Virus record (IMG/VR): IMGVR_UViG_3300014914_000026
Location: 1-30,061 of that record
Length of the DNA stretch: 30,061 nucleotides
Reading direction: 5' to 3' (one strand)
The position numbers and the translations under genes are program-made. This document shows positions 1,960-30,061 of the stretch, piece after piece. Each line of letters starts with the position of its first letter. Positions within the stretch are counted from its first letter, which is position 1. The notes below the pieces were generated by a model that made no database searches, was not told the DNA's origin, and saw only the letters and a program-made list of their open reading frames with translations.

Positions 1960-2086
1960 GGGTCTGCTGTTTTATTGGTTTAGGGTTTTTTATAATGGAG
2001 CCACAGCATATACATTGGTATCCTTTTACATTGTCATAGTATATGAGGGTTCTTGGTTTTTTACATATTGGACAGTAGGCGATCAT
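1883..2086 (-). CDS. Zn-ribbon protein
   Basis: CPIC...CICC; ATGA-coupled to the upstream wHTH gene. Confidence 0.65.
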   Translation of the reverse strand: MIAYCPICKKPRTLIYYDNVKGYQCICCGSIIKNPKPIKQQTLIQNTSQETKNDYLSPHNSQEKKDT

Positions 2087-2343
2087 AGTAGGTCTGCGTT
2101 TTTGAGTAGTTGTTTTGCTATGTCTGATAGTTTATACATTCCATGTCCTCCTTTCTTTAGAAGACCAAGATGATACATTTTTAGCATCATGTTTCTTACT
2201 GTATTTATGTTTTTGTTTAATGTGCTTGCCACTCTGCTGGGAGTAGCATATCCCAAGGGAGAGTCTAAAGATATTTGATGAATTGTGAGGAGGTATTCGG
2301 CTCTCTCAGGTGTAAGGAGACTTTGAGGGATGGTTTGGCTCAT
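2083..2343 (-). CDS. Winged-helix DNA-binding protein
   Basis: ATPSRVASTLNKNINTVRNMMLKMYHLGLLKKGGHGMYKLS; TATA-like TTTATAAA about 35 nt upstream. Confidence 0.75.
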   Translation of the reverse strand: MSQTIPQSLLTPERAEYLLTIHQISLDSPLGYATPSRVASTLNKNINTVRNMMLKMYHLGLLKKGGHGMYKLSDIAKQLLKNADLL

Positions 2344-2432
2344 GGCTCATCGACCCAAATCTATTTTAGTTTATGGGAATTTATAAATGTTGTGTAAAGT
2401 TTATTAAGGGCTATAGGCATCTTACAGATGAG

Positions 2433-2630
2433 ATGGAGGCGAGAGATTATATAGCTTTGATGATTCTTGGGGGGTGCTTCGTCTTAGTGGGGTTGAGTAA
2501 GGTCGGTTGGGATGATGTGATCCCTGTCATCTCGGTGATTATGGGCTATTACTTTGGGTATGTTGTGGGCTTAGTTAAGGGCTTTTTATTGAAAAGGGGC
2601 ATAAAAGAGGAGGATTTTGAGGAGGACTAG
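2433..2630 (+). CDS. Small two-TM membrane protein with charged tail (holin-like topology)
   Basis: Start reassigned to MEARDY (ATG 2433) downstream of TATA-like aagtttattaa; two hydrophobic segments then KRGIKEEDFEED. Confidence 0.6.
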   Translation: MEARDYIALMILGGCFVLVGLSKVGWDDVIPVISVIMGYYFGYVVGLVKGFLLKRGIKEEDFEED

Positions 2631-2837
2631 TCCCACTATAACTCCGCTACAGAACTCCGCTATGTCTCCGCTTGTCTCTTCGTAGGCTTCTCCATTCATT
2701 AGGTCTAAGATTTGCTTTAGGATGAAGAGAGCCGAGAGGAGAATAGTGTAGCCTAAACCTCCAAAGATTGTTGATAGCAGTCCAAGTAGGAAGTGGCATA
2801 TACTACCGATGTCAAGACCTACCTTTGTCGCCTTCAT
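2586..2837 (-). CDS. Small multi-TM membrane protein
   Basis: Probable start MKATKVGLD; hydrophobic helices around H-F-L-L-G and E-E-T-S-G-D motifs; directly follows the protease gene. Confidence 0.6.
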   Translation of the reverse strand: MKATKVGLDIGSICHFLLGLLSTIFGGLGYTILLSALFILKQILDLMNGEAYEETSGDIAEFCSGVIVGLVLLKILLFYAPFQ

Positions 2838-3603
2838 ATTTCCATCTAAGTCTTTCAAGTATTCCCATCCTACTTAAAGGTTTAACCCTCTTTCTCCAAG
2901 CTCTCCTTATAGCTTCATATTTTTCTCTTGTTTCTTTGAGCTTCCTCCCCAATTTTAGGTATTCTTTTATACCCATAGATTCACTTCCTCCTATCCATTC
3001 ATAGTAATGTGTATTATTGAATTTGACCCATGCGTGATATCTTAGTTCATTCATGTTCCACCAGTTGGTTTCTGGGTCTATTTCTGGATATTCCTCTGGG
3101 ACTTCATCAAGGGTGCTTTCCACCAGATACCACTTGTCTGATTCTGGGTCGTGAACTATAGGCCATGCGTGTCCGCCTAATATTTTGTCTCCTTTGTATA
3201 GGTATCCGAGACATTGATAGGCTTCTACTCCTATTATTAGGCATCCTCCTACTATGGCTATACTTGAGCCGTCGCAATCTCCTACTAATGTTGCTACTAC
3301 TTCACTTACTTTGTCCCAGTAGTCCGCTGTTAGAGTCCAGCATCTCTTATATTTTCCGAAGTATGCGTTATATGTATGTTTATCATCTGGAAGACCCATT
3401 CTGAAAGGATATTCTACCCTTTCTATGACTTTACGTGCTACTTGTCTCCATGTGGTTAATCCACCGAAGAACTCTTGACATATTTCTGAGTCTATATCAA
3501 GAAGTTCATTTAATTTGAATTTCCAGAATCTTTTAGCCTCTACTTTATCACCAACTTCTTTAGCACCTTTGAAAATTGGAAATTCAGTTTCTTTCCAAGT
3601 CAT
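2812..3603 (-). CDS. Transglutaminase-like (papain-fold) cysteine protease
   Basis: GDCDG (Cys), GGHAW (His) and WYLVEST (acidic residue) in the order typical of transglutaminase-like/BTLCP proteins; GGTGA RBS. Confidence 0.75.
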   Translation of the reverse strand: MTWKETEFPIFKGAKEVGDKVEAKRFWKFKLNELLDIDSEICQEFFGGLTTWRQVARKVIERVEYPFRMGLPDDKHTYNAYFGKYKRCWTLTADYWDKVSEVVATLVGDCDGSSIAIVGGCLIIGVEAYQCLGYLYKGDKILGGHAWPIVHDPESDKWYLVESTLDEVPEEYPEIDPETNWWNMNELRYHAWVKFNNTHYYEWIGGSESMGIKEYLKLGRKLKETREKYEAIRRAWRKRVKPLSRMGILERLRWKYEGDKGRS

Positions 3604-3619
3604 ATACCATCACCACTTA

Positions 3620-4327
3620 TTACATGCTTGTATAGTAGATTATATATACAGCTCCATCTCCTCCTTTCCCTCCATCACCACCACCTGCGTATAGGCTACC
3701 TCCTCCACCTCCACCTCCTGCTCCTGGAGATGAACCAGGTTCTCCTGATTCGCCTTTATCTCCTGTAACAGTCGATCCTCCATCTCCTCCAGATGCTATA
3801 TTGTTGGGTGTGTCAGCTCCTTTTCCTCCCTTGGTGTTCCCTGTTTCTCCTGAACTTCCAGATAGCATCGATATTTCTGAGTTTATAGCATATCCTGAAG
3901 GTGATCCTCCACCACCACCTGCTCCTGCTCCACCACTATTTGCTTTACCTCCTCCACCTCCTGAGCCTCCTCCTGCTGTAAGCCCAAAAGCAGTTGTATC
4001 TCCCCCTGCTGAACCTGGAGAGCCATTTTCATCTACAGCTCCTCCACTTCCTCCACTACCTCCTGCTCCTACTGTTATTGAATATGAAGAACCTGGAGTT
4101 ACTGGAATTCCTCTCGCTATTATAACCGCTCCTGAACCTCCTCCTCCACCACTACTTCCCGCAGATGAAGAACCTCCTCCACCTCCACCTCCTCCACCGC
4201 CTCCTCCAACTATTATTACATCGATTACATGAACGTCTTGTGGTGCTACCCATGTGTATGTTCCAGGTGTTGTAAAGGCATCTACCTTCTTTTTTATTGT
4301 AAACTTGATTGGATGTATTAGGCTCAT
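3620..4327 (-). CDS. Glycine-rich virion/tail-fibre-type protein
   Basis: FTTPGTYTWVAP...VIIVGGGGGGG...VTPGSSYSITVGAGG...GGDGAVYI matches the glycine-rich domain of phage tail proteins. Confidence 0.8.
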   Translation of the reverse strand: MSLIHPIKFTIKKKVDAFTTPGTYTWVAPQDVHVIDVIIVGGGGGGGGGGGGSSSAGSSGGGGGSGAVIIARGIPVTPGSSYSITVGAGGSGGSGGAVDENGSPGSAGGDTTAFGLTAGGGSGGGGGKANSGGAGAGGGGGSPSGYAINSEISMLSGSSGETGNTKGGKGADTPNNIASGGDGGSTVTGDKGESGEPGSSPGAGGGGGGGSLYAGGGDGGKGGDGAVYIIYYTSM

Positions 4328-4331
4328 ATTT

Positions 4332-4700
4332 TTATATCACCTCCATTACTTGTAGTATGAATAAGTATGGGAATGACCTTGGAGTTCCTGCTGTTTGAGT
4401 TATTGTTACTCTGAATTTTGCGTCGTAGGAGCATGTTATAGCAGGAATTCTGACTATAGGTATAGTTTGAGAGCCAGTAAATTTGAGTTCATCTGTTTTT
4501 CTTTGATTTGTTCCATCGACAGCAATATAGGTTCTTATTATAACTTCGTCTCCCTCTGCCATATTGCTTAGGTCTATTTGCCCCTCTATAATGTAGTCAT
4601 CAGACTGGTCTTCTAAGTTAATTATGTCTGTCTCCGTGTTAAGAGATTCTAAAGTAAGTGTTCCCTTGTATCTCTCTTTTCGTGCTATTCTAACTGGCAT
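4332..4700 (-). CDS. Putative beta-sandwich structural protein
   Basis: 122 aa with alternating beta-strand pattern; co-transcribed with fibre-type genes; GGTGG RBS. Confidence 0.55.
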   Translation of the reverse strand: MPVRIARKERYKGTLTLESLNTETDIINLEDQSDDYIIEGQIDLSNMAEGDEVIIRTYIAVDGTNQRKTDELKFTGSQTIPIVRIPAITCSYDAKFRVTITQTAGTPRSFPYLFILQVMEVI

Positions 4701-4710
4701 ATTTGTCCAC

Positions 4711-5292
4711 CTATCTTGTGAACTGGATGTAGTATCTTATTGTGAGAGTGTCTCCAGCGTCCCAGTCTATTGGGACTGCTGAGAATACTTTTCTTGCGAG
4801 TAGGTCTCCTCCTGCTGATGCGTTGAATACTCCTGCTTCTGATATGTTCATTGTTCCTGAGAGTCCATCTGCTGAAGAGAATGTTGCTTCAAGTTTAGCT
4901 GTGTCTCCTGATACTGATGTGGTCTCCTGTGATACAGTAGCGGATTTTCTTATGATTTCAGCCTCCAATTCAGTATCAGTTACCGCTTCGGATGTGGTTC
5001 CTGAGCCTATGCCAAGGTATCCGAATTTATCTTCTGTCAATCCAGCGAAGACTAGTCTTACTATACATGCTAGACCTACATTTGTGATTACGTTTTTCCT
5101 CCAGTATTCTAAGTCTATAAGTTTGGCTGGGAAGCTTGAGAAGGGACAGTCTCCAGCATCATCATCGATTAGTGGATTGGGTCTTAGGATTCTTCTTGGG
5201 GGTGCTCCTATGTGGTATTTAACTTTTCCATCTTTATCTTTGACTATGATTTCCACATATCCACTTATCTTACCGAAGTCCTTTGCGGACAT
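4711..5292 (-). CDS. Phage tail-fibre/collar N-terminal-domain-like protein
   Basis: Start reassigned to MSAKDF (GGAGGT RBS). NVITNVG...LGIGSGTT...DTELEAE..RK...EAGVFNA...LLARKVF...DTLTIRY resembles the tail-fibre anchoring domain of tailed phages (P2 gpH N-terminus/DUF3751-like). Confidence 0.65.
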   Translation of the reverse strand: MSAKDFGKISGYVEIIVKDKDGKVKYHIGAPPRRILRPNPLIDDDAGDCPFSSFPAKLIDLEYWRKNVITNVGLACIVRLVFAGLTEDKFGYLGIGSGTTSEAVTDTELEAEIIRKSATVSQETTSVSGDTAKLEATFSSADGLSGTMNISEAGVFNASAGGDLLARKVFSAVPIDWDAGDTLTIRYYIQFTR

Positions 5293-5367
5293 ACCTCCTC
5301 TATAAATGTGAGGAGAGGAGGGATTATTTATAAGTTTTGGAATTGATTTAATGGGGTTGGAAGAACT

Positions 5368-8300
5368 GTGGGTTGGCTTAGTGGATGGCAATATAGAAAA
5401 AGCCATGAAATAGAAGGCTCTACTGCTGGTGCGGTTACAGATTATCAGATAGGTATTAAAGTTTATAGAAGCACAGGGACAGATGGAACTGAAACAGAGA
5501 GTCTAATAACATGGGGTGTTGTATATGTTGGAACTAAATGTAGAGAAGATTTTGGAGACATAAGATTCACAGCAGATGATGGTGAAACCCTCTTAGACTA
5601 TTACATGGAGGAATATGAGTATGGTTCTTGGGCTAAATTCTGGGTGAAGATACCTTCTATACCTGCTAGTCCTGACTCTGTTACTATATATGTTTATTAT
5701 GGAAACTCTGATGCGACATATTCAGGAAGTGGAGAAGATACTTTCCAATTCTATGAAGATTTTGAAGATGGAACTTTGGGTTCTACACCTCCAGGCTGGA
5801 CTGTAGAAGGAAGTAGTGGAGACTATTTCCATGTGGATGACACTCATGTAAAGCAGGGTAGCAAAAGCGGTAAGTTACATGAAGATGGTGATGGAGAAGA
5901 ACTATCAGTTAAAGCTCATAAACATGAGACATCTACTGGTGGAGGAGCGGTTGTCCATGCCTGGATGATATTCAGCGGAGATAGGTCTGCCATAGCAGGA
6001 CTGGAACCTGGAGGATCAACCTCAGATTACTATGCCTCATACCTCCTATGTAGAGATGACAAAGACGACTGGAGACGTAACTCTGGTGGAACATTTTACA
6101 CGATTACAGAGTTCTCGGCTCCTTCAGACTTGGTGTGGTATAGACTGGAGATTTATCATCGCCCATCAGATGGTAAAGTTAAATATGTAAAGGATAGAAC
6201 CGAGGAATCAGATTGGGTTGATCCAAGAAGCTCTTGGAGTGAGATAGATGGAGTCCTTTTAAAAAGCCACTATAGGTATCCTGCTGACTCATGGTGGGAT
6301 CAAATCTATATTAGAAAGTATATAGACCCTGAGCCTAGTCATGGTTCCTGGGGAAGTGAGGAAACCTCTGGAGTATCTTATGTTCAGGAAATAACTGATG
6401 TAGGAAAAGTAGGAGATGCGTTATCAAGGGGAATAATTGATGTGGAAAAAGATTCGGGAAAGAGTGTAGATAGCTTAGTTCGTATTGTTGCTTTTCATAA
6501 AAGTGTTGTTGATATTGGTAAAGGTGTTGATAGTTTGAGTAAGTTTGTGGAATATTATAGAAGTTATATGGATGTGGGGAAAGGTTTAGATTCACTTAGT
6601 CTTACTGTTAATTATGTTAGGAGTTTTATTGATGTGAGTAAAGGATTAGATTACATTAGTATGTTTAGAGAAGTGTATAGAGATGTTATGGATAGAGTTT
6701 ATGGTGAGTTTTGGTTATCGACTTTTAGAGGAAAATCATTTTATGAAACTGTGAAAAGTGTTGATTTCATATCTAAGGATTATGATGGAAGACTAAGAGA
6801 TTCTGTTTTAGGTATAGATACTATTGGAAGAGATTTTGAGAAAGTCTATATTGATTATGGAATGGTCGCTGATTTTATCTCTAAAAGACCTCTTAAAAGT
6901 TTGGTTGATAGCTCTTTAGCTGTTGATTATTTTGAGAAGGTTGTAGAGTTTGTTAGAACGCTTTTTGATACTGGGGTTTCATCAGATTATCTTAAGAAGG
7001 AAATTGGAAAGTTAGCTAAAGATGTTGGAAAGACTGTTGATTATGTGGAGAAAACTCCAGCTAAGGTGTTAGTTGATACAAGTAGGATAATTGATTGGTA
7101 TAGTAAGTTTGCCTCTAAAATATTTTTCGATACATTTATTTCATTAGATTATCTTAGGAAAACTCCTGCTAAAAAGGTTGTTGATGTTGGGAAGGTTTCA
7201 GATTGGTATTGTAAGCTGGTTTCAGAATCCTTAATTGACACTTGTAAAGGTGTTGATTGGTATAGTAAAACTTCAACATTCTACAGAAGCTTTACAGATA
7301 TAGGCAAAACTGTAGATTACATAGAAAAAATGTCCATGAAGGCTCTCCTTGATATTGTTAAAAACATTGATTGGTTTACTAAGACTGCTATATTCTACAG
7401 GAACTTGTATGAGTTTGTAAATACCTCTGATTATTTAGCTAAAGATGTGCTTAGAAGTTTCCTTGATTATGCTGTTGGTGAGTTTTTGATTTCAAGTCTT
7501 CGTGGTAAGACCTTCAGGGAGACAATTAGAACTTTTGATTATCTATATAGAAACATTCTAAAAGTTTATGTTGATATTGGTAGAGCTTCTGATTACTTGA
7601 GAAAAGATAGAACCAAACCCATAAGTGATGTCTTTAAGGTTTTGGATTATGTTAAAAAGGAATCATTAAAATGTTTTGTTGATATAGGGAGGTCAGTTGA
7701 TTTCTTGTATAAAGAGTTCTTGAAAAGGACTTTTGATTCTGTGAGCGTTACTGATTGGTTTTTAAAGTTTGCTGTGAAGTTGTTTAGGGATGTTGTTTTA
7801 GGAAGGGATTGGTCTCTTAGAGATTCGCTTAAAGTCTTGTTGGAATTATGTAAAGGTTTAGACTATTTGAGTAGAGACACCACTAAGAGCTATTTGGATT
7901 ATAGTATATGTTCAGATTTTGTTTTGTTAGATATTGTGAAGTCCTTAGTTGAAGTTAGTAGAAGCTTTGACTATACCAGTAAAAGTATTCTTAGGAATTT
8001 CATTGATTATGCTTATGGTGAGCATTTCTTATCGACATTAAAGGGAAAGGAACTTAAAGATTATGTGAAAGTTTTTGATATTCTAAGTAGGGATTACTTG
8101 AAACTATTTTTTGACTTAATGAAGGGTGTTGATTTTATATATAAAGATTATGGCAAGAGGTTTGAGGAGTCCATTATAGGTGTAGATTTTGTTGAGAAAG
8201 GTTTTGGAATAAGACTTGAAGAGACAACAAAAGTGTATGAAAAAATTAATAGAGATATTTTGAAGAGCCTAATAGATTTGGGTAGGTCTCTTGAGCTATT

Positions 8301-8952
8301 TTACAAGGATGTGATTAAGAGTGTAATTGAGTATGTTAGTATATCAGATTACCTTAGTAAGGGTATTTCTAGAATTTTTGAGTTTGAAGCTCCTGTAGTT
8401 GGATATGTCTATCATATAAGAGGTAAGGGTTTCTATGAGACTGTAGGTGTTTCGGATAGAAGTATGATAGATGTAAACAAAAGATTTGTGGAATCTTTGA
8501 AACTTATTGAGAAAATGGCTAAGGATTATTCAACTTTGATAGATTTGGAAGTTTTGGGGAAAGGATTTACATCTAAGGATGTTACAAGTTCAATTATTGA
8601 GTTTGGAAGGGTATTAGAGCCTATTTTTAGTAGAGATATTTTAAGAGCTTTTAAGGAGTGGATTATTGTAAGAGATAAATACTGGAGAAAGATCATTGTT
8701 ACACTTGTAGATTATATACTGGATACTGGTGGAGTGGCAAGAGGTGTATCGAGACCTCTTAGGGATAAGGGTAAGGGAGTAGATGTTTTGACTAAAGTGG
8801 CTTATACGCTTGCTGGTCAAGATGTTAGAAGAGTTTACTGGCATAAGGTTTGGGGGGATATTATAGAGCCATCTGACCATAACTTAAATATAGAGGCTTG
8901 TAAAGTTATTCTTGAGGCGATGAAAAGAGTTAAAGATAAGTTGGGTGAATAG
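5368..8952 (+). CDS. Large adhesin/fibre protein: N-terminal DUF2341, lectin-like beta domain, long 18-20-aa repeat stalk
   Basis: WLSGWQYRK...DFGDIRFT..DG.TLLDY..E...FWVKIPSIPA...IYVYYGN is the DUF2341 pattern; aa ~335-1150 are D-x-G-K-x-x-D-(Y/W/F)-x-x-K repeats. Confidence 0.75.
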   Translation: MGWLSGWQYRKSHEIEGSTAGAVTDYQIGIKVYRSTGTDGTETESLITWGVVYVGTKCREDFGDIRFTADDGETLLDYYMEEYEYGSWAKFWVKIPSIPASPDSVTIYVYYGNSDATYSGSGEDTFQFYEDFEDGTLGSTPPGWTVEGSSGDYFHVDDTHVKQGSKSGKLHEDGDGEELSVKAHKHETSTGGGAVVHAWMIFSGDRSAIAGLEPGGSTSDYYASYLLCRDDKDDWRRNSGGTFYTITEFSAPSDLVWYRLEIYHRPSDGKVKYVKDRTEESDWVDPRSSWSEIDGVLLKSHYRYPADSWWDQIYIRKYIDPEPSHGSWGSEETSGVSYVQEITDVGKVGDALSRGIIDVEKDSGKSVDSLVRIVAFHKSVVDIGKGVDSLSKFVEYYRSYMDVGKGLDSLSLTVNYVRSFIDVSKGLDYISMFREVYRDVMDRVYGEFWLSTFRGKSFYETVKSVDFISKDYDGRLRDSVLGIDTIGRDFEKVYIDYGMVADFISKRPLKSLVDSSLAVDYFEKVVEFVRTLFDTGVSSDYLKKEIGKLAKDVGKTVDYVEKTPAKVLVDTSRIIDWYSKFASKIFFDTFISLDYLRKTPAKKVVDVGKVSDWYCKLVSESLIDTCKGVDWYSKTSTFYRSFTDIGKTVDYIEKMSMKALLDIVKNIDWFTKTAIFYRNLYEFVNTSDYLAKDVLRSFLDYAVGEFLISSLRGKTFRETIRTFDYLYRNILKVYVDIGRASDYLRKDRTKPISDVFKVLDYVKKESLKCFVDIGRSVDFLYKEFLKRTFDSVSVTDWFLKFAVKLFRDVVLGRDWSLRDSLKVLLELCKGLDYLSRDTTKSYLDYSICSDFVLLDIVKSLVEVSRSFDYTSKSILRNFIDYAYGEHFLSTLKGKELKDYVKVFDILSRDYLKLFFDLMKGVDFIYKDYGKRFEESIIGVDFVEKGFGIRLEETTKVYEKINRDILKSLIDLGRSLELFYKDVIKSVIEYVSISDYLSKGISRIFEFEAPVVGYVYHIRGKGFYETVGVSDRSMIDVNKRFVESLKLIEKMAKDYSTLIDLEVLGKGFTSKDVTSSIIEFGRVLEPIFSRDILRAFKEWIIVRDKYWRKIIVTLVDYILDTGGVARGVSRPLRDKGKGVDVLTKVAYTLAGQDVRRVYWHKVWGDIIEPSDHNLNIEACKVILEAMKRVKDKLGE

Positions 8953-13900: not shown

Positions 13901-15564
13901 GTCATGGCGTATATGCTACCTGTTGTAATAGCTTTCTTAACATAGTCTATTTTGAAGTATTCTGGGGTAGCCATTTGTTCTGCCTTAAGTATTTCCTCAT
14001 ATTTCTGTATTAGAAATTCATGTGTTTGTGATGCTATGGATTCTGGTAGTGGTTTAAGATAGTGCTCTGCTAATGGCTGTATAGCTTTACCTGACTTTTC
14101 CATTACTTGTATTGTTGAGTCCCAAAATTCCTTTGTTATTTCTGATATTATATTTGCCACACCTTTTTGTATATTTTGAAGTGAATCCCAGAAGAACTTG
14201 AGGAGATTCTGAAGACCTGATACTAATGCCTCTGACAGAGTTTTTATTTCTCCCCAGAATATATTGAATATTGATTTAAGGTTCACTCTTATCTCAGCAA
14301 ATATTTGGGGACTCATCCAAATTGATGGTAGAGAAGTTAGGGGAGTTGTAATGTATTCATTGAACCATTCTGGGAACCACGTTGGGAAGTTCATTATTGC
14401 GTTTACGAATCCTTGTGTGGTTTGGGCTAGTGAGTTAAAGCCTTTTGTTACATTGTCGATTATTTCTTTGAGTCCCTCCTGGAAGGGCTTTATTATACCT
14501 TCATTTATTGAATCAAATAATGGCTGTATTGTTGTAGCCCATGCTTTTTCTATTATATTGCTGTATATTGCTGGTGCTTCTTCTTTAAGGTTTACTAAGT
14601 ATTGAATGAATCCTGTTATGGTCTCTCCTATTTGTGATATTCCCATAATGGCTGTTACTATTCCTTCTGTTATTTGTGGGATACTTTCTAACCATCCTCT
14701 AAAGGTTTCAGTTATTGGTTCCATAAGGCTTTGTAATGTTGTGAATATTTGAGTTATTCCATTTATTATTGTGTCTGGTATTGTCGTTATTAGATTTATG
14801 ATGGGCTGTATTGCTTCGATTATAGAGTCAGGTATTGTTGATAGAAAATCTGTAACATTTGATATTAGTGATTCTATGCCAGATATACCTTTTTGTATCA
14901 TATCTGTAAGAGATTTTCCAAGTTTTTCTGTTAATGATTCGAGACTGCTGAATACTCCACTTATTGCTTCACCTATGTTGGTAATATAGTCAGATATTGA
15001 TGAAATAGCCTTTTGAATAACATTATTTAAGCTTTCTCCTAATGCCTGGAGATTATCTATAAGTCCTTGAGCAAGTTTACTTAAGCTATCAAATACACTA
15101 TTTAGACTGTCAAGAAGACTTGATGCGAGGTCTTTTAGTCCTTCAAATTGTTCTGAAACCCATTTAATGGCATCATATATAGGGTCTAGAACTACTGGTG
15201 CTATTTTTTGGACTTCACTCCAGATGTTTGTTATTGTAGAGTTTATAGTGTTTAAGATTGGTTTTATTGCTGTTTCAATGAAGGTTTCTATGCCAGATAT
15301 TATCCATGAGGCTATTGAACTAAGAATATCTGCGAACCAGTCTTTTAGTTGTCCAATTGGATCAACTATTCCTCCTACACCTGAAACTATTAGGTCTAAA
15401 TCTATTTCTTCTATTGTATATATGTCGGTTACTGTGATTGATAACGATTCCTTTTTTGGGAGATTAAGAGTAATCTGAGGTGGATTTGAGATGAGTATGT
15501 CGGATAGGATTTGGGCTGTTTTCTTTATCTCCTTGGGGTCTAACTCCTCCCTGATGGAGGACAT
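10990..15564 (-). CDS. Large minor virion protein (rudivirus terminal-fibre-like) with amphipathic helical N-terminal repeats
   Basis: 1524 aa, all-helical; C-terminal repeats REYIPTP..LAT.SEY...W..Y...RPI.D; size and position in the structural operon match the largest rudiviral virion protein. Confidence 0.6.
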   Translation of the reverse strand: MSSIREELDPKEIKKTAQILSDILISNPPQITLNLPKKESLSITVTDIYTIEEIDLDLIVSGVGGIVDPIGQLKDWFADILSSIASWIISGIETFIETAIKPILNTINSTITNIWSEVQKIAPVVLDPIYDAIKWVSEQFEGLKDLASSLLDSLNSVFDSLSKLAQGLIDNLQALGESLNNVIQKAISSISDYITNIGEAISGVFSSLESLTEKLGKSLTDMIQKGISGIESLISNVTDFLSTIPDSIIEAIQPIINLITTIPDTIINGITQIFTTLQSLMEPITETFRGWLESIPQITEGIVTAIMGISQIGETITGFIQYLVNLKEEAPAIYSNIIEKAWATTIQPLFDSINEGIIKPFQEGLKEIIDNVTKGFNSLAQTTQGFVNAIMNFPTWFPEWFNEYITTPLTSLPSIWMSPQIFAEIRVNLKSIFNIFWGEIKTLSEALVSGLQNLLKFFWDSLQNIQKGVANIISEITKEFWDSTIQVMEKSGKAIQPLAEHYLKPLPESIASQTHEFLIQKYEEILKAEQMATPEYFKIDYVKKAITTGSIYAMTVSWIPFYAQIPLRMAQWVMRGVARSIGELGWKHKISLKPLGIGYETEIDISKIIGASLYTFATNIGRWMDELGRGMIYGYAIWLTRPIGRLINYWLRNVLPIIAPRDDEIIEFLRRNMAYIIQKDPTTGVIREVKPTERYKEILKIAKFFLSIYGHSDVTLDWFFKYTPDMWIKVKDRFGTFRNIPLSLVHKLPTSSELCRMMVRDLFYSLEDFTKAIQTQGMIPDIAYLYYLLHFRYASPERLWSFISRGISGMLWVSISDSERRALEKVAQTIGAFTPIAPIELNFKYSKLFDALKTYMKWHDYARFSWIKGFTSDNLIVIDTLADIPTKIDQRWMTRWGLYNILSERGVKITSPVSAFREKLIEPSASSEIKLDLSLFSRTLQATGLHPDWVPLTAVAETINTLVDERTLLRTGFINLFKEGFWNINALEKLLAGFITASFKVSYFDTSENKWVTGWVNYPVMYLPPERKLLELRALMDRALDILRDTVRDLSRGYSEFIIQNYEEFKEKLTGIIEKINEFFAKDYEKITGVKLPDELKLAFVEEYYSAYINSLNIWRDIYTIRRVRYWTQRWLGYVMYRVTTGVVKREDVEALADYVGEKAKLTDYEKEFIKGVLDRMVNIAIREYIPTPTQLATLSEYLVIKEDLIDKALTERLVPDEWKPIWKQYIEIRPIADDIKSLLTTYRRALIYIKIPEDIESKIKEYMEMINFTDKEMEILKLRVELEEMILQARQSMREYIPTPSMLATISEYIPKAREYFDDVVKAKRIPEKWQPIWAEYIDLRPIMDEVKKMISRAEDLYVYFIITEDDYKKILNQLKNFGYTDKELELMLTSSRYERHYRAFRELVGDVDRMVMLSEYSPQARSYALGQLYKMIDALPVDEETKNVLKAMWEQFIRLKPIMDEVRRYITELLSDFASGIITEEEFVKELEALKEWGLDDYEIMFYKAIGGMRRARYLARRQRGM

Positions 15565-18512: not shown

Positions 18513-18543
18513 TTTGTGTATTGTTATAGATGGAGGTGGATGG

Positions 18544-19536
18544 ATGAGGGGGAATAGGGAAGCTATCCTAACGGAGGTCGATAATGCTATAAGGCTCTTT
18601 GGTGCTCAGGGTGTAAAGCCTACATTGAGAACTTTGTTCTACTATCTGGTTAGCAAGAATATCATACCTAACACCAGATCAGCATATAAGAGGCTGTCAA
18701 GGATTCTGGTTAAGGCGAGAAAGGAGGGGAGATATGCCTGGGATTTCCTTGAGGATAAGACAAGGGTGGTTCTCGGATACCGATCAGACCATAGATTTAG
18801 CGATGATGTCTTAGAAGACTTTGAGGAGAGATTAAAGTATAAGCTTGAGAGCATAGACATAAGTGAGATACTTAGTGAGCTATTTGACTGGATGATGCCT
18901 ACAATAGATGTTGAAATGTGGGCGGAGCAACCTATTATACCAGAGATATGGATAGAGAAGGAGGCTTTGTCTTCGACGATATATAATTGGACAAGAGACT
19001 TGAAGGTGAGAATAAGAGTCAATCGTGGTTACAGTAGTTGGACATTCATATACAACAATGTTGAAGACTTGAAGACTACACTATTGAGGCATGACAAGGT
19101 GGTTATACTATATCTTGGAGACTTAGACCCAAGCGGAGTGGATATTCAGAGATTTCTTGAGGAAGCCTTAGAATACTTTGGACTTGACAGAGAGAAGGTT
19201 GAGTTAAGGAGGGTTGCTGTTACACCAGAGCAAGTTGAGGAGTTTGATCTACCTCCAAGACCAGAGGATGCGGAGACTTTAGCTAAGTTACAGAGAGATA
19301 CAAGAAGTAAGAGCTATACTTATGACTATATAGTAGAGCTTGATAGCTTAGTTGCCTATGTTCCAGAGGAGTTTAGAAACATAGTTAGAAGTGCTATCTA
19401 TGACTGCTGGGATAAAGATATATACAACAAACTTAAAGACAGAGCTAAGGAGCTAAGCAATAAAGCTTTCAAGCTTTTAGTAGATTATAAGGAGAAGGCG
19501 AGAGAAAAGATATTGAATATGTTAAGAGAGGAGTGA
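18544..19536 (+). CDS. Stand-alone Spo11/TopoVI-A-like protein (5Y-CAP + TOPRIM; Mini-A-like)
   Basis: TLRTLFYYL (candidate catalytic Tyr), EIWIEK, RGYSS, YLGDLDPSGVDI (DxD), ELDSL; start reassigned to MRGNRE after a GGAGGTGG RBS. Confidence 0.8.
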   Translation: MRGNREAILTEVDNAIRLFGAQGVKPTLRTLFYYLVSKNIIPNTRSAYKRLSRILVKARKEGRYAWDFLEDKTRVVLGYRSDHRFSDDVLEDFEERLKYKLESIDISEILSELFDWMMPTIDVEMWAEQPIIPEIWIEKEALSSTIYNWTRDLKVRIRVNRGYSSWTFIYNNVEDLKTTLLRHDKVVILYLGDLDPSGVDIQRFLEEALEYFGLDREKVELRRVAVTPEQVEEFDLPPRPEDAETLAKLQRDTRSKSYTYDYIVELDSLVAYVPEEFRNIVRSAIYDCWDKDIYNKLKDRAKELSNKAFKLLVDYKEKAREKILNMLREE

Positions 19537-19587: not shown

Positions 19588-19612
19588 TATGTGGAAGAGG
19601 TATCAGGCAAAG
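19588..19612. repeat. 25-bp inverted-repeat arm in the capsid 3'UTR (partner at 19942-19966)
   Basis: tatgtggaagaggtatcaggcaaag versus reverse complement of ctttgcctgatacttcttccacata: 24/25. Confidence 0.92.
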
Positions 19613-19617
19613 GATGT

Positions 19618-19992
19618 TTAGTATGGCATCACCCAGCCTGCGATGACCTGTATAATCTCATCGCAGACTGAGGGATCGAGGCCATAGGCGTTCACATAGT
19701 AGCTCTTGAGACCAGAGCTGATCTTCTTGCCAGCATCACCCTTCTGGCGGACTATATGCCTCAGAAGGGCGAGGCCGAAGGCGAGGTAGGTCGCCCTCAT
19801 ACCACCAGTAATGCCATACTCATCGAGGATCGGCCTCACCAAGTCCCTGGCGGTGGCAACCATGTTTAGACCTTCCTGTGCTCTATCGACGGCGATGCTC
19901 TGGACATCCGTGAACCTAGTCCCTATGACGGTGGGGTTGAACTTTGCCTGATACTTCTTCCACATATCCAGACCAGTCTTATAGAGTGGCAT
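19618..19992 (-). CDS. Major capsid protein, SIRV2/Adnaviria fold
   Basis: KYQAKFNPTV...ILDEYGITGGMRATYLAFGL...GLKSYYVNAYGLDPSV..II.VI.G aligns by eye with rudivirus MCP (KWQAKF..NPTV...LTQYGITGPNRAIYQGFGL...GLKGYYISAFNANPQV); GGAGGTGA RBS. Confidence 0.92.
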   Translation of the reverse strand: MPLYKTGLDMWKKYQAKFNPTVIGTRFTDVQSIAVDRAQEGLNMVATARDLVRPILDEYGITGGMRATYLAFGLALLRHIVRQKGDAGKKISSGLKSYYVNAYGLDPSVCDEIIQVIAGWVMPY

Positions 19993-20802: not shown

Positions 20803-21114
20803 ATGAGCCTCCAGAGGAAGATTATGACTCTTATCGCTCCTATACCTGATCCGACTACAAGAATGGATGTAGCTTCCACTATAAATTATCTGTTTAGCGT
20901 CTATAATACTGGGGTAGTTAATGATGATGAAGTCAAGGATGCTTTATTTGAGGTTTGTAGGGATGTCTTGGAGGCTACTAATCCTGATTTAGGGATGGAG
21001 GAGATTAGGAAGAGAGCGGAGACTTTGGCTAAGGAATTTATGAGTGCTTTTAAGTTGGAGAGTTCTGTGCGGAGGATGATGAGTAGATTTAGGGGTAGAT
21101 TTATGCCTCTTTAG
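20803..21114 (+). CDS. Helical hypothetical protein
   Basis: 103-aa ORF 2 nt after the RHH stop. Confidence 0.7.
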   Translation: MSLQRKIMTLIAPIPDPTTRMDVASTINYLFSVYNTGVVNDDEVKDALFEVCRDVLEATNPDLGMEEIRKRAETLAKEFMSAFKLESSVRRMMSRFRGRFMPL

Positions 21115-21292
21115 ATTTCTTTAGTTTTACTATTGCCTTTATGATTATGTAGAGTAGGATGGATAATATAGTTGGGACTATGATTAGACCTATGATGGGG
21201 AGGAGAACTAGTCCAAACCATCCGAGTTTTATGAGTGGGTATATGAATAGTAGGTAGAGGATGGCGTATATGATGTTTGGGATGTTTATCAT
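21101..21292 (-). CDS. Small two-TM membrane protein
   Basis: Almost entirely hydrophobic with a basic tail; GAGGTG RBS. Confidence 0.6.
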   Translation of the reverse strand: MINIPNIIYAILYLLFIYPLIKLGWFGLVLLPIIGLIIVPTILSILLYIIIKAIVKLKKSKEA

Positions 21293-29929: not shown

Positions 29930-29938
29930 GTCTATCCC

Positions 29939-30061
29939 CGAAAAAATTTTGTGTTGTTTGGTGTATTTAAGCCTTTTGGTGTTGGGTGCTTATGGCTTTG
30001 TGGGAAAAAGGCTTAGTATTCTGTCTATGGCTCCGAGTATTTTGAGGCATTCTGATCCGCT
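29939..30061. repeat. Right inverted terminal repeat (123 bp)
   Basis: Exact reverse complement of 1-123. Confidence 0.97.

Follow-up and report, generated by a model that had tools for sequence, protein, structure and literature searches.

A transglutaminase-like enzyme and two overlapping membrane genes as a candidate egress cassette of a rudivirus-like archaeal virus

The exit of archaeal viruses from murein-less cells is largely unknown outside a few models. In the Sulfolobales rudiviruses and their kin, the egress device is a pyramid formed by a single small protein (PVAP), and a 2024 review describes holin genes in archaeal virus genomes as still elusive, pyramid proteins as too diverse to exclude by sequence and the mode of egress as not predictable from sequence (PMC10791045). 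Tailed viruses of methanogens lyse their hosts from within by means of PeiW and PeiP, which are cysteine enzymes with a transglutaminase fold. For secreted enzymes of the same superfamily, activation by calcium has been proposed, with D139 of LapG acting as a ligand (PMC4866520). Here, we analyze a stretch of 30,061 nucleotides (nt) of viral DNA, the IMG/VR record IMGVR_UViG_3300014914_000026 at its full length (hereafter the window), and within it a block of three genes that encode a transglutaminase-fold enzyme and two small membrane proteins. Our leading reading, which we hold tentatively and by analogy, is that the block might be a mobile late egress cassette of a rudivirus-like virus, comparable to holin-endolysin systems. 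A recurrent mobile module of an enzyme and membrane proteins offers concrete egress candidates, including one in a rudivirus-like genome without a known pyramid protein. If functional, the cassette would be a new enzyme-plus-holin variant in a virus group so far known for pyramid exit.

The window encodes a major capsid protein of the SIRV2 type, is bounded by inverted terminal repeats (ITRs) and, from the set of conserved structural and glycosyltransferase genes, has homologs of SIRV2 ORF335, ORF356, ORF488, ORF1070, ORF564 and ORF176 (Table 1). Hence, its gene content identifies it as the genome of a rudivirus-like (Adnaviria, Ligamenvirales-like) rod virus. Its capsid protein shares 36-40% identity with that of every Rudiviridae member in the phage collection. 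Five co-directional genes run along the minus strand from 5406 to 2586 with gaps of at most 16 nt; the enzyme is the fourth of them and a small membrane protein the last, and the 3' end of the latter gene overlaps a convergent gene for a protein with two transmembrane (TM) segments. An earlier note on this DNA had described a rod virus and, at the end of its fiber operon, a protease gene followed by two membrane genes in tail-to-tail overlap. This description agrees with the list of open reading frames (ORFs), the DNA itself and the homologies given above. The sequence of the block is not an assembly artifact; positions 2000-5000 are reproduced without difference by an independent assembly of the source run (Logan contigs), and a 486-nt contig of a second sediment study is identical to the window over 2411-2896.

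Table 1. Features of the window that bear on the block, with their positions and the basis of each assignment (aa, amino acids).
Feature	Position	Strand	Basis and remarks
Whole window	1-30061		Complete linear genome
ITR arms	1-126 and 29936-30061		126 bp, 99% complementary
Palindromic TATA-like TTTATAAA	2381-2388		Motif inspection; shared with divergent winged helix-turn-helix (wHTH) gene 2083-2343 (-)
TATA-like TTTATTAA	2400-2407	+	Motif inspection; about 30 nt before ATG 2433; would give a leaderless mRNA
Convergent two-TM protein	2433-2630	+	65 aa from ATG 2433 (public gene call); ORF extends upstream to 2373 (85 aa)
Tail-to-tail overlap of the two membrane ORFs	2586-2630		45 bp
Co-directional membrane protein	2586-2858	-	90 aa from TTG 2858 or 83 aa from ATG 2837
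Transglutaminase-fold Cys-His-Glu/Asp enzyme	2812-3603	-	263 aa; ORF list, homologs, AlphaFold2 model
Polycationic C-terminal tail of the enzyme	2815-2964	-	Last 50 residues; charge +11 vs -11 in the remainder; partly amphipathic
Catalytic codon Asp166	3106-3108	-	Checked in DNA
Catalytic codon Glu162	3118-3120	-	Checked in DNA
Catalytic codon His145	3169-3171	-	Checked in DNA
Catalytic codon Cys110	3274-3276	-	Checked in DNA
Shine-Dalgarno (SD)-like GGTGAT	3609-3614	-	5 nt before the enzyme ATG; motif inspection only
TATA-like TATATATAA			About 45 nt upstream, within the 3' end of the glycine-rich gene; motif inspection only
Glycine-rich tail-fiber-type protein	3620-4327	-	Pfam Gly_rich_2, E 6e-18; PHROG tail families
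122-aa protein	4332-4700	-	Conserved in rod-virus contigs: C10 70%, L025 47% identity
gp80-like fiber protein, first gene of the string	4711-5406	-	phrog_5417, E 5e-20; tail fiber phrog_4176
Major capsid protein, SIRV2-type	19618-19992	-	Pfam Sulf_coat_C, E 2e-21
63-aa ORF	21101-21292		Two strong TM segments, coding-like codon usage; alternative egress or exclusion candidate

By its modeled core fold and its Cys-His-Asp/Glu set, the enzyme belongs to the transglutaminase-like/papain-clan (CA) superfamily, in which the nucleophilic Cys heads a helix that packs against a beta-sheet bearing the His and the acid. The AlphaFold2 model has a mean pLDDT (predicted local distance difference test) of 87, and all leading structural matches, obtained with Foldseek and two VIA-align runs, belong to this superfamily. 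Axonemal DRC7-type domains (Z 9.4-9.9), TglA (8.6), the putative protease 3isr (8.2) and LapG (8.2) are followed by TG2, TG3 and FXIII at about 7 and by PeiP (6.7) and PeiW (6.5); CPR-C4, PNGase and arylamine N-acetyltransferases are also among the matches. In an alignment of 16 homologs with 36-46% identity to the window enzyme, Cys110, His145 and Glu162 are invariant, as is Asp109, and Asp166 is nearly so (at least 90%). A second invariant motif, YP..G.PDD.H, spans residues 65-76 (Y65-P66 ... G70-x-P72-D73-D74-x-H76), and the active-site motifs are retained across 164 retrieved relatives. The Pfam model Transglut_core (PF01841) stays below its gathering score in the window enzyme (16.7 bits vs a cut-off of 23) and matches 7 of the 16 family members at E<0.1. 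By hydropathy, the enzyme has no signal peptide, and only its buried catalytic helix scores as a TM segment; the N-terminus is hydrophilic. The Cys-His-acid enzyme without a signal peptide, which the earlier note had called a protease, is thus well supported by the model, the structural matches and the invariant catalytic residues.

The C-terminal tail of the enzyme is specific to the family. While the remainder of the protein is acidic, the tail has a net charge of +9 to +14, and it ends in a conserved W/R-rich motif. The nearest structural clusters align to residues 1-217 and leave out the tail. A complex prediction for the enzyme and the 83-aa form of its co-directional partner scored 0.00 with no controls run and weighs neither way.

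At thresholds of E<1e-30, E<1e-10 and E<0.001, a profile search of 1.8 billion representatives returned 51, 123 and 879 clusters, respectively. As judged from these profiles, the enzyme represents a previously undescribed family, separate within a known superfamily, with the active-site signature DYW...E...GDC[E/D][D/G], in which GDCED is near-universal. This signature comes closest to that of LapG, a protease that cleaves surface proteins and depends on calcium. LapG is the only solved structure matched at the sequence level (E 0.004, over the nucleophile-bearing segment), and the nearest characterized kin of the family by sequence is LapG and not PeiW/PeiP. The likeness to PeiW/PeiP from which the earlier note had argued goes no further than the superfamily fold; it ranks below that to LapG, pseudomurein-binding repeats are missing from the enzyme and the metagenomic bin that holds the window has no mcrA. 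Transglutaminase-like/DUF553 proteins, about 220 aa long and encoded by tailed viruses and Methanobacteriota, are the nearest predicted structures in the ESM Atlas. A tblastn search with the enzyme gave no match in the phage collection, and the species-genome collection yielded remote matches only, in metagenome-assembled genomes (MAGs) of Bathyarchaeota and Nezhaarchaeota and in two bacterial MAGs. Within the library covered, no paper links transglutaminase with Adnaviria, and the archaeal-virus papers examined name no such enzyme.

Several relatives of 556-660 aa are interrupted by inteins, as confirmed by the Pfam models Intein_splicing, Hint and LAGLIDADG_3. Their four insertion sites all lie within the most conserved catalytic motifs. 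P0018, P0030 and P0038 are interrupted directly before the catalytic Cys and P0070 two residues further upstream, whereas the intein of P0066 lies in the acid motif ESTLD and that of P0051 after the PDD.H motif. Inteins lodge at sites that are unable to change. Their placement hence speaks for an active enzyme that matters to its viruses, for strong selection on these motifs and for PDD.H as a functional site. In locus L002 (4811-6380), an enzyme homolog called as two ORFs with a LAGLIDADG_3 match probably contains an intein as well. A literature search found no paper naming both inteins and transglutaminase-like proteins.

The co-directional membrane protein has two hydrophobic segments that flank an acidic loop and no charged tail, and its ORF overlaps the 3' end of the enzyme gene by 26-47 nt. 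The codon usage of the 90-aa ORF is coding-like, and a profile built from only the downstream genes of L013, L004 and L043 ranks it first among the 451 ORFs of the window (E 0.0025); by these two measures, it is a real gene. It belongs to a family (family A) found directly downstream of enzyme homologs in L004/L005, L013/L014 and L043. The convergent 65-aa protein has a short N-terminus, two TM segments, a basic stretch after the second and then an acidic tail, and thus a holin-like layout. Its codon usage is ambiguous and did not settle its status, but homologs (E 3e-7) lie upstream of enzyme genes, on the same strand, in L038 and L039, so that by homology the ORF is a real gene linked to the enzyme. 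Word searches with each membrane protein found only the protein itself, and neither matched a holin family in Pfam, PHROG or NCBIfam below E 0.001.

Comparison with L038 and L039 also bears on the arrangement of the two membrane genes. Judged by these loci, the association of the convergent gene with the enzyme is conserved and the tail-to-tail overlap is not. The antisense holin/antiholin control proposed in the earlier note consequently finds no comparative support, though it may operate in this genome. Neither a T-run nor a hairpin terminator was seen at the overlap on either strand, so that the convergent transcripts probably overlap beyond the 45 bp. The promoter that the earlier note had assigned to the convergent gene is a putative one, matched to two TATA-like motifs (Table 1). 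A scan for sigma-70 promoters and hairpin terminators stayed at background; the consensus is inapplicable to archaea.

The linkage between the enzyme and membrane proteins recurs in other loci. Contexts were gathered by exact look-up of homologs and by a metagenome scan, which gave 31 loci in which the sequence downstream of the enzyme could be read. In 17 of them, a small TM protein is encoded by the next gene on the same strand, and in three more the enzyme itself is fused to a C-terminal hydrophobic hairpin (P0015), giving 20 of 31. The next gene is non-TM in eight loci, where it encodes a zinc-ribbon, Cys-rich, wHTH or helical 84-aa protein, and is missing in three. Counted as distinct contexts, a TM protein follows in about 10 of 18-19, whereas the background rate of TM calls for small ORFs in these loci is 33%; single-linkage clustering at 60% identity merged contexts with differing neighbors and was left out of this tally. 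The neighborhood on which the earlier note had built is therefore conserved in part, although the closest relative of the virus, C10, lacks the whole block. At least eight unrelated families are represented among the downstream TM proteins, which mostly start -16 to +1 nt from the enzyme stop. Conservation of position without homology resembles that of holins. Three relatives are fused to TM segments, with a C-terminal hairpin in P0015, an N-terminal two-TM hairpin in P0042 and a C-terminal anchor in P0046, and the cationic tail directly precedes the fused TM segments.

Except for L025, L038 and L039, the contigs of the homologs share only the enzyme with the window (tblastn), bar weak glycosyltransferase matches in L012 and L027. 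Thus, the enzyme travels between different viruses. In L038 (3598-5031), four same-strand genes, all abutting or overlapping, encode a 62-aa two-TM homolog of the convergent protein, a 78-aa coiled-coil protein with a C-terminal TM segment and a weak FlaC-like match, the enzyme and an 86-aa two-TM protein; this set resembles a more complete form of the cassette. Ten neighbors in foreign loci gave no match in a PHROG scan, and a Pfam scan of neighbors in C10, L038 and L004 was mostly empty.

Within the window, the block follows genes for fiber proteins. The glycine-rich protein encoded directly upstream of the enzyme also matches a PHROG named tail fiber assembly, and the true start of the gp80-like fiber gene is probably near 5295. 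The order of fiber genes and then enzyme recurs in L025 and L038. L025 is a fragment of a related rod virus in which a copy of the 122-aa protein again precedes fiber genes and the enzyme homolog, and its fiber domains comprise Phage_fiber repeats, a gp53-like C-terminus and an H-type lectin. C10, which stems from the same bin as the window, keeps the first two genes of the string (70-77% identity) and carries in the place of the enzyme an unrelated 254-aa protein and an unrelated 89-aa glycine-zipper-like TM protein (C10 1-1330, 2785-3825, L057). The block is hence, by this comparison, an exchangeable accessory cassette.

Several further observations concern the fiber region. A right-handed beta-helix (depolymerase-like) protein is encoded at the contig end of C10. 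The rod virus bears fiber domains of the tailed-phage type (3620-5406), among them Gly_rich_2, a podophage gp80-like domain and PHROG tail fiber families, and this suggests, at the level of domain matches, that adsorption modules are exchanged between Caudoviricetes-type and Adnaviria-type viruses. The divergent gene encodes a 1194-aa DUF2341 protein (5368-8952), the SIRV2 ORF564 homolog, with many degenerate internal repeats of about 18 residues; the DNA repeat families D2 and D4 lie within this gene at 6494-7712, and its GTG start overlaps the annotated start of the fiber gene.

The earlier note had seen no clear pyramid gene in the window, and wider searches agree with it. SIRV2 P98 and SIFV gp43 gave best tblastn E values of 0.28 and 0.17 in the window, both in unrelated frames. 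Searches of the other bin contigs likewise found no pyramid protein, and these proteins are not represented by a Pfam model. With a hydropathy predictor, no ORF of the window fits the pyramid architecture of about 90-100 aa with an N-terminal TM segment and a helical body of about 60 residues. By the same kind of prediction, three TM ORFs of the genome are not shadows of other genes, namely the two of the block and the 63-aa ORF listed in Table 1.

How might the block serve egress? The enzyme, which lacks a signal peptide, would accumulate in the cell and be held at the inner face of the membrane by its tail, a partner protein or both. Late in infection, the small membrane proteins would permeabilize or remodel the membrane, so that the enzyme could reach the cell envelope and cleave a protein or isopeptide link in the S-layer or its anchor. 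Calcium outside the cell might act as a switch, as in LapG-type enzymes. This step is weak for the copy in the window because its GDCDG lacks one presumed ligand. In this virus, the module would replace the pyramid protein of the Sulfolobales rudiviruses. A bolder form of the proposal, which we regard as doubtful, is that this would be the first non-pyramid egress system of Adnaviria and one case of a widespread, unrecognized type of lysis cassette in uncultivated archaeal viruses, in which a LapG-like protease with a cationic, membrane-seeking tail is released or activated by interchangeable small membrane proteins, the long-sought archaeal holins.

The egress reading has to accommodate several findings that weigh against it. 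The enrichment of TM genes downstream of the enzyme is modest (p about 0.04-0.06 by our own estimate), and about eight distinct contexts have a zinc-ribbon or wHTH gene or none downstream. C10 is a close relative without the enzyme and its membrane partners, the window enzyme has one presumed calcium ligand fewer than the family norm, and protease, isopeptidase, amidase and cross-linking activities are not separable by sequence. The positive-inside rule applied to the fused relatives predicts that the catalytic domain is cytoplasmic, which suits an enzyme inside the cell no less well than a lysin. The TM fusions and the cationic tail also suggest a site at the cytoplasmic face, and such a site is a poor match for a classical secreted lysin. 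The earlier note had read the block as a lysis or entry module; fold, catalytic triad, membrane linkage and the missing pyramid homolog are in keeping with this, the predicted cytoplasmic face is not. These topology predictions are the mainstay of a different explanation, unlikely in our view but a serious contender, in which the enzyme would not be a lysin and would act inside the cell at the cytoplasmic membrane face, held there by its cationic tail and a TM partner. There, it might cleave or deamidate a protein of host or viral origin. Examples would be a defense protein, a ubiquitin-like conjugate, the tail of a membrane protein or, for superinfection exclusion, a component of a pilus or secretion system. 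Besides three independent TM fusions (P0042, P0015, P0046), with the cationic tail placed directly before fused TM segments, and the lack of a signal peptide, the many intracellular enzymes of this fold (PNGase, arylamine N-acetyltransferases, deubiquitinase-like proteins) agree with such a role. However, the LapG-like GDCED signature is typical of extracytoplasmic calcium-activated enzymes, the post-fiber position is reminiscent of a lysis cassette, as is the coupling to varied small TM proteins without mutual homology, and no candidate substrate is evident. If this explanation were true, the module would be a new membrane-tethered device for host manipulation.

The position in the fiber string would also suit an enzyme that is associated with the virion or serves entry or receptor destruction, is delivered with the terminal fibers and clears surface protein at adsorption or cleaves receptors at release. 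Its gene is the fourth of five in the string, the fiber-then-enzyme order recurs in L025 and L038, C10 encodes its depolymerase-like protein near this module and LapG itself frees a surface adhesin. We nevertheless consider this distinctly unlikely, as the enzyme is small and stands alone without a recognizable virion-attachment domain, is linked to TM segments by coupling or fusion even though virions of the rudivirus type lack a membrane, and is found in contigs that share no other gene with the window virus. A true transglutaminase or maturation protease that cross-links or trims fiber or capsid proteins during assembly would have the fold of TG2, TG3 and FXIII, and both its structural neighbors and the upstream match to tail fiber assembly could be invoked for it. 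The nearest relatives in sequence and structure are, however, hydrolases (LapG, 3isr, CPR-C4), the linkage to membrane proteins would be left unexplained and C10 keeps the same fiber genes without the enzyme, which makes this role improbable. Least probable of all, and very unlikely, is that the block has no joint function. The enzyme gene would then be accessory, the small ORFs would have no connection with it or would in part not be genes, and the 45-bp overlap would carry no meaning. Word searches left both membrane ORFs as orphans, the codon usage of the convergent one is ambiguous, the overlap was seen in this genome only and a TM call is made for one third of the small ORFs of such contigs in any case; yet relatives of both ORFs lie beside enzyme homologs, and three gene fusions together with start/stop coupling in many loci point to a functional tie. 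The egress cassette remains the reading we favor, with the reserve stated above.

The source environment of the virus is sediment. In IMG/VR, the window matched solely its own 30,061-bp record, megablast of the whole window against the phage collection gave no match, and no RNA run was found to contain it. The bin that holds it is 72% complete and mixed and carries at least four further related rod-virus contigs (C10, C7, C14, C23). Since the contig GC content ranges from 0.36 to 0.60 and several related virus contigs are present, the bin is unfit for assigning a host. Neither 16S nor mcrA was found in this incomplete, mixed bin, and no spacer-like match to the window was found. The virus encodes a tRNA-Lys (anticodon UUU, 1731-1807). 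Over 58 nt, it shares 88% identity with a tRNA of bin contig C36, which may be a clue to the host, albeit a weak one. The rudivirus-like contigs of the bin (G000), which also include C116 and C287, have core genes that are 30-80% identical and a GC content of 0.38-0.60, and C10 carries two capsid-protein paralogs (14813-15184 and 1522-1872). Elsewhere in the window, a 340-aa protein (18514-19536) matches phrog_6247 ("DNA topoisomerase") at E 1e-49 and no Pfam family, and might initiate replication in this virus group. An inverted repeat of 25 nt (96% complementary) has its arms 329 nt apart, one just downstream of the capsid gene stop (19588-19612) and the other within the 5' coding end of the capsid gene (19942-19966).

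Among known egress devices, PVAP (SIRV2 P98, STIV C92, SIFV gp43) belongs to the nearest classified viruses and is assembled from a single protein, which has a size of about 10 kDa and its TM segment at the N-terminus, whereas neither the window nor the related bin contigs contain a sequence match (best E 0.17-0.28). The nearest predicted structures, stand-alone transglutaminase-like/DUF553 proteins, many of them viral, align to residues 1-217 with TM-scores of 0.58-0.70. They differ in lacking the cationic C-terminal 45 residues, and for the window enzyme the kinship lies below Pfam thresholds. PeiW and PeiP share with the enzyme an origin in archaeal viruses, the transglutaminase fold and the lack of a signal peptide. 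The likeness stops at the superfamily level (8z4f for PeiP and 8jx4 for PeiW, about 12% identity), and the enzyme has no Peptidase_C71 match in Pfam and no pseudomurein-binding repeats; moreover, its virus is rod-shaped and comes from sediment.

The overall organization resembles holin-endolysin cassettes, in which a cytoplasmically made enzyme adjoins diverse small membrane genes, often translationally coupled, located after the fiber genes and exchangeable. Moreover, the 65-aa protein is predicted to be class-II-holin-like with two TM segments, both ends inside and a charged C-terminus. In contrast to these cassettes, there is no murein target, the enzyme gene mostly comes first, matches to holin families are missing and some of the enzymes carry fused TM segments whose predicted orientation would leave the enzyme inside. 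LapG (BTLCP, Peptidase C93) differs in having a Sec signal peptide and a periplasmic site, while the window enzyme belongs to an archaeal virus, has extra N-terminal elements, the PDD.H motif and the cationic tail, and reads GDCDG. The LapG model NF045674 reaches 16-17 bits (cut-off 320) in two relatives only, and none of the 16 family members matches PF06035 (Peptidase_C93). Nonetheless, LapG shares the fold (4fgo, root-mean-square deviation 4.4 over 138 residues) and the Cys-His-acid set, gives the best target coverage in Foldseek (TM-score 0.48-0.52) and matches in sequence across DYW..E..GDCED. The partner of the window enzyme is a small TM protein rather than a c-di-GMP receptor, but LapG, too, has a membrane protein, LapD, that keeps it at the membrane, and its substrate is a protein of the cell surface.

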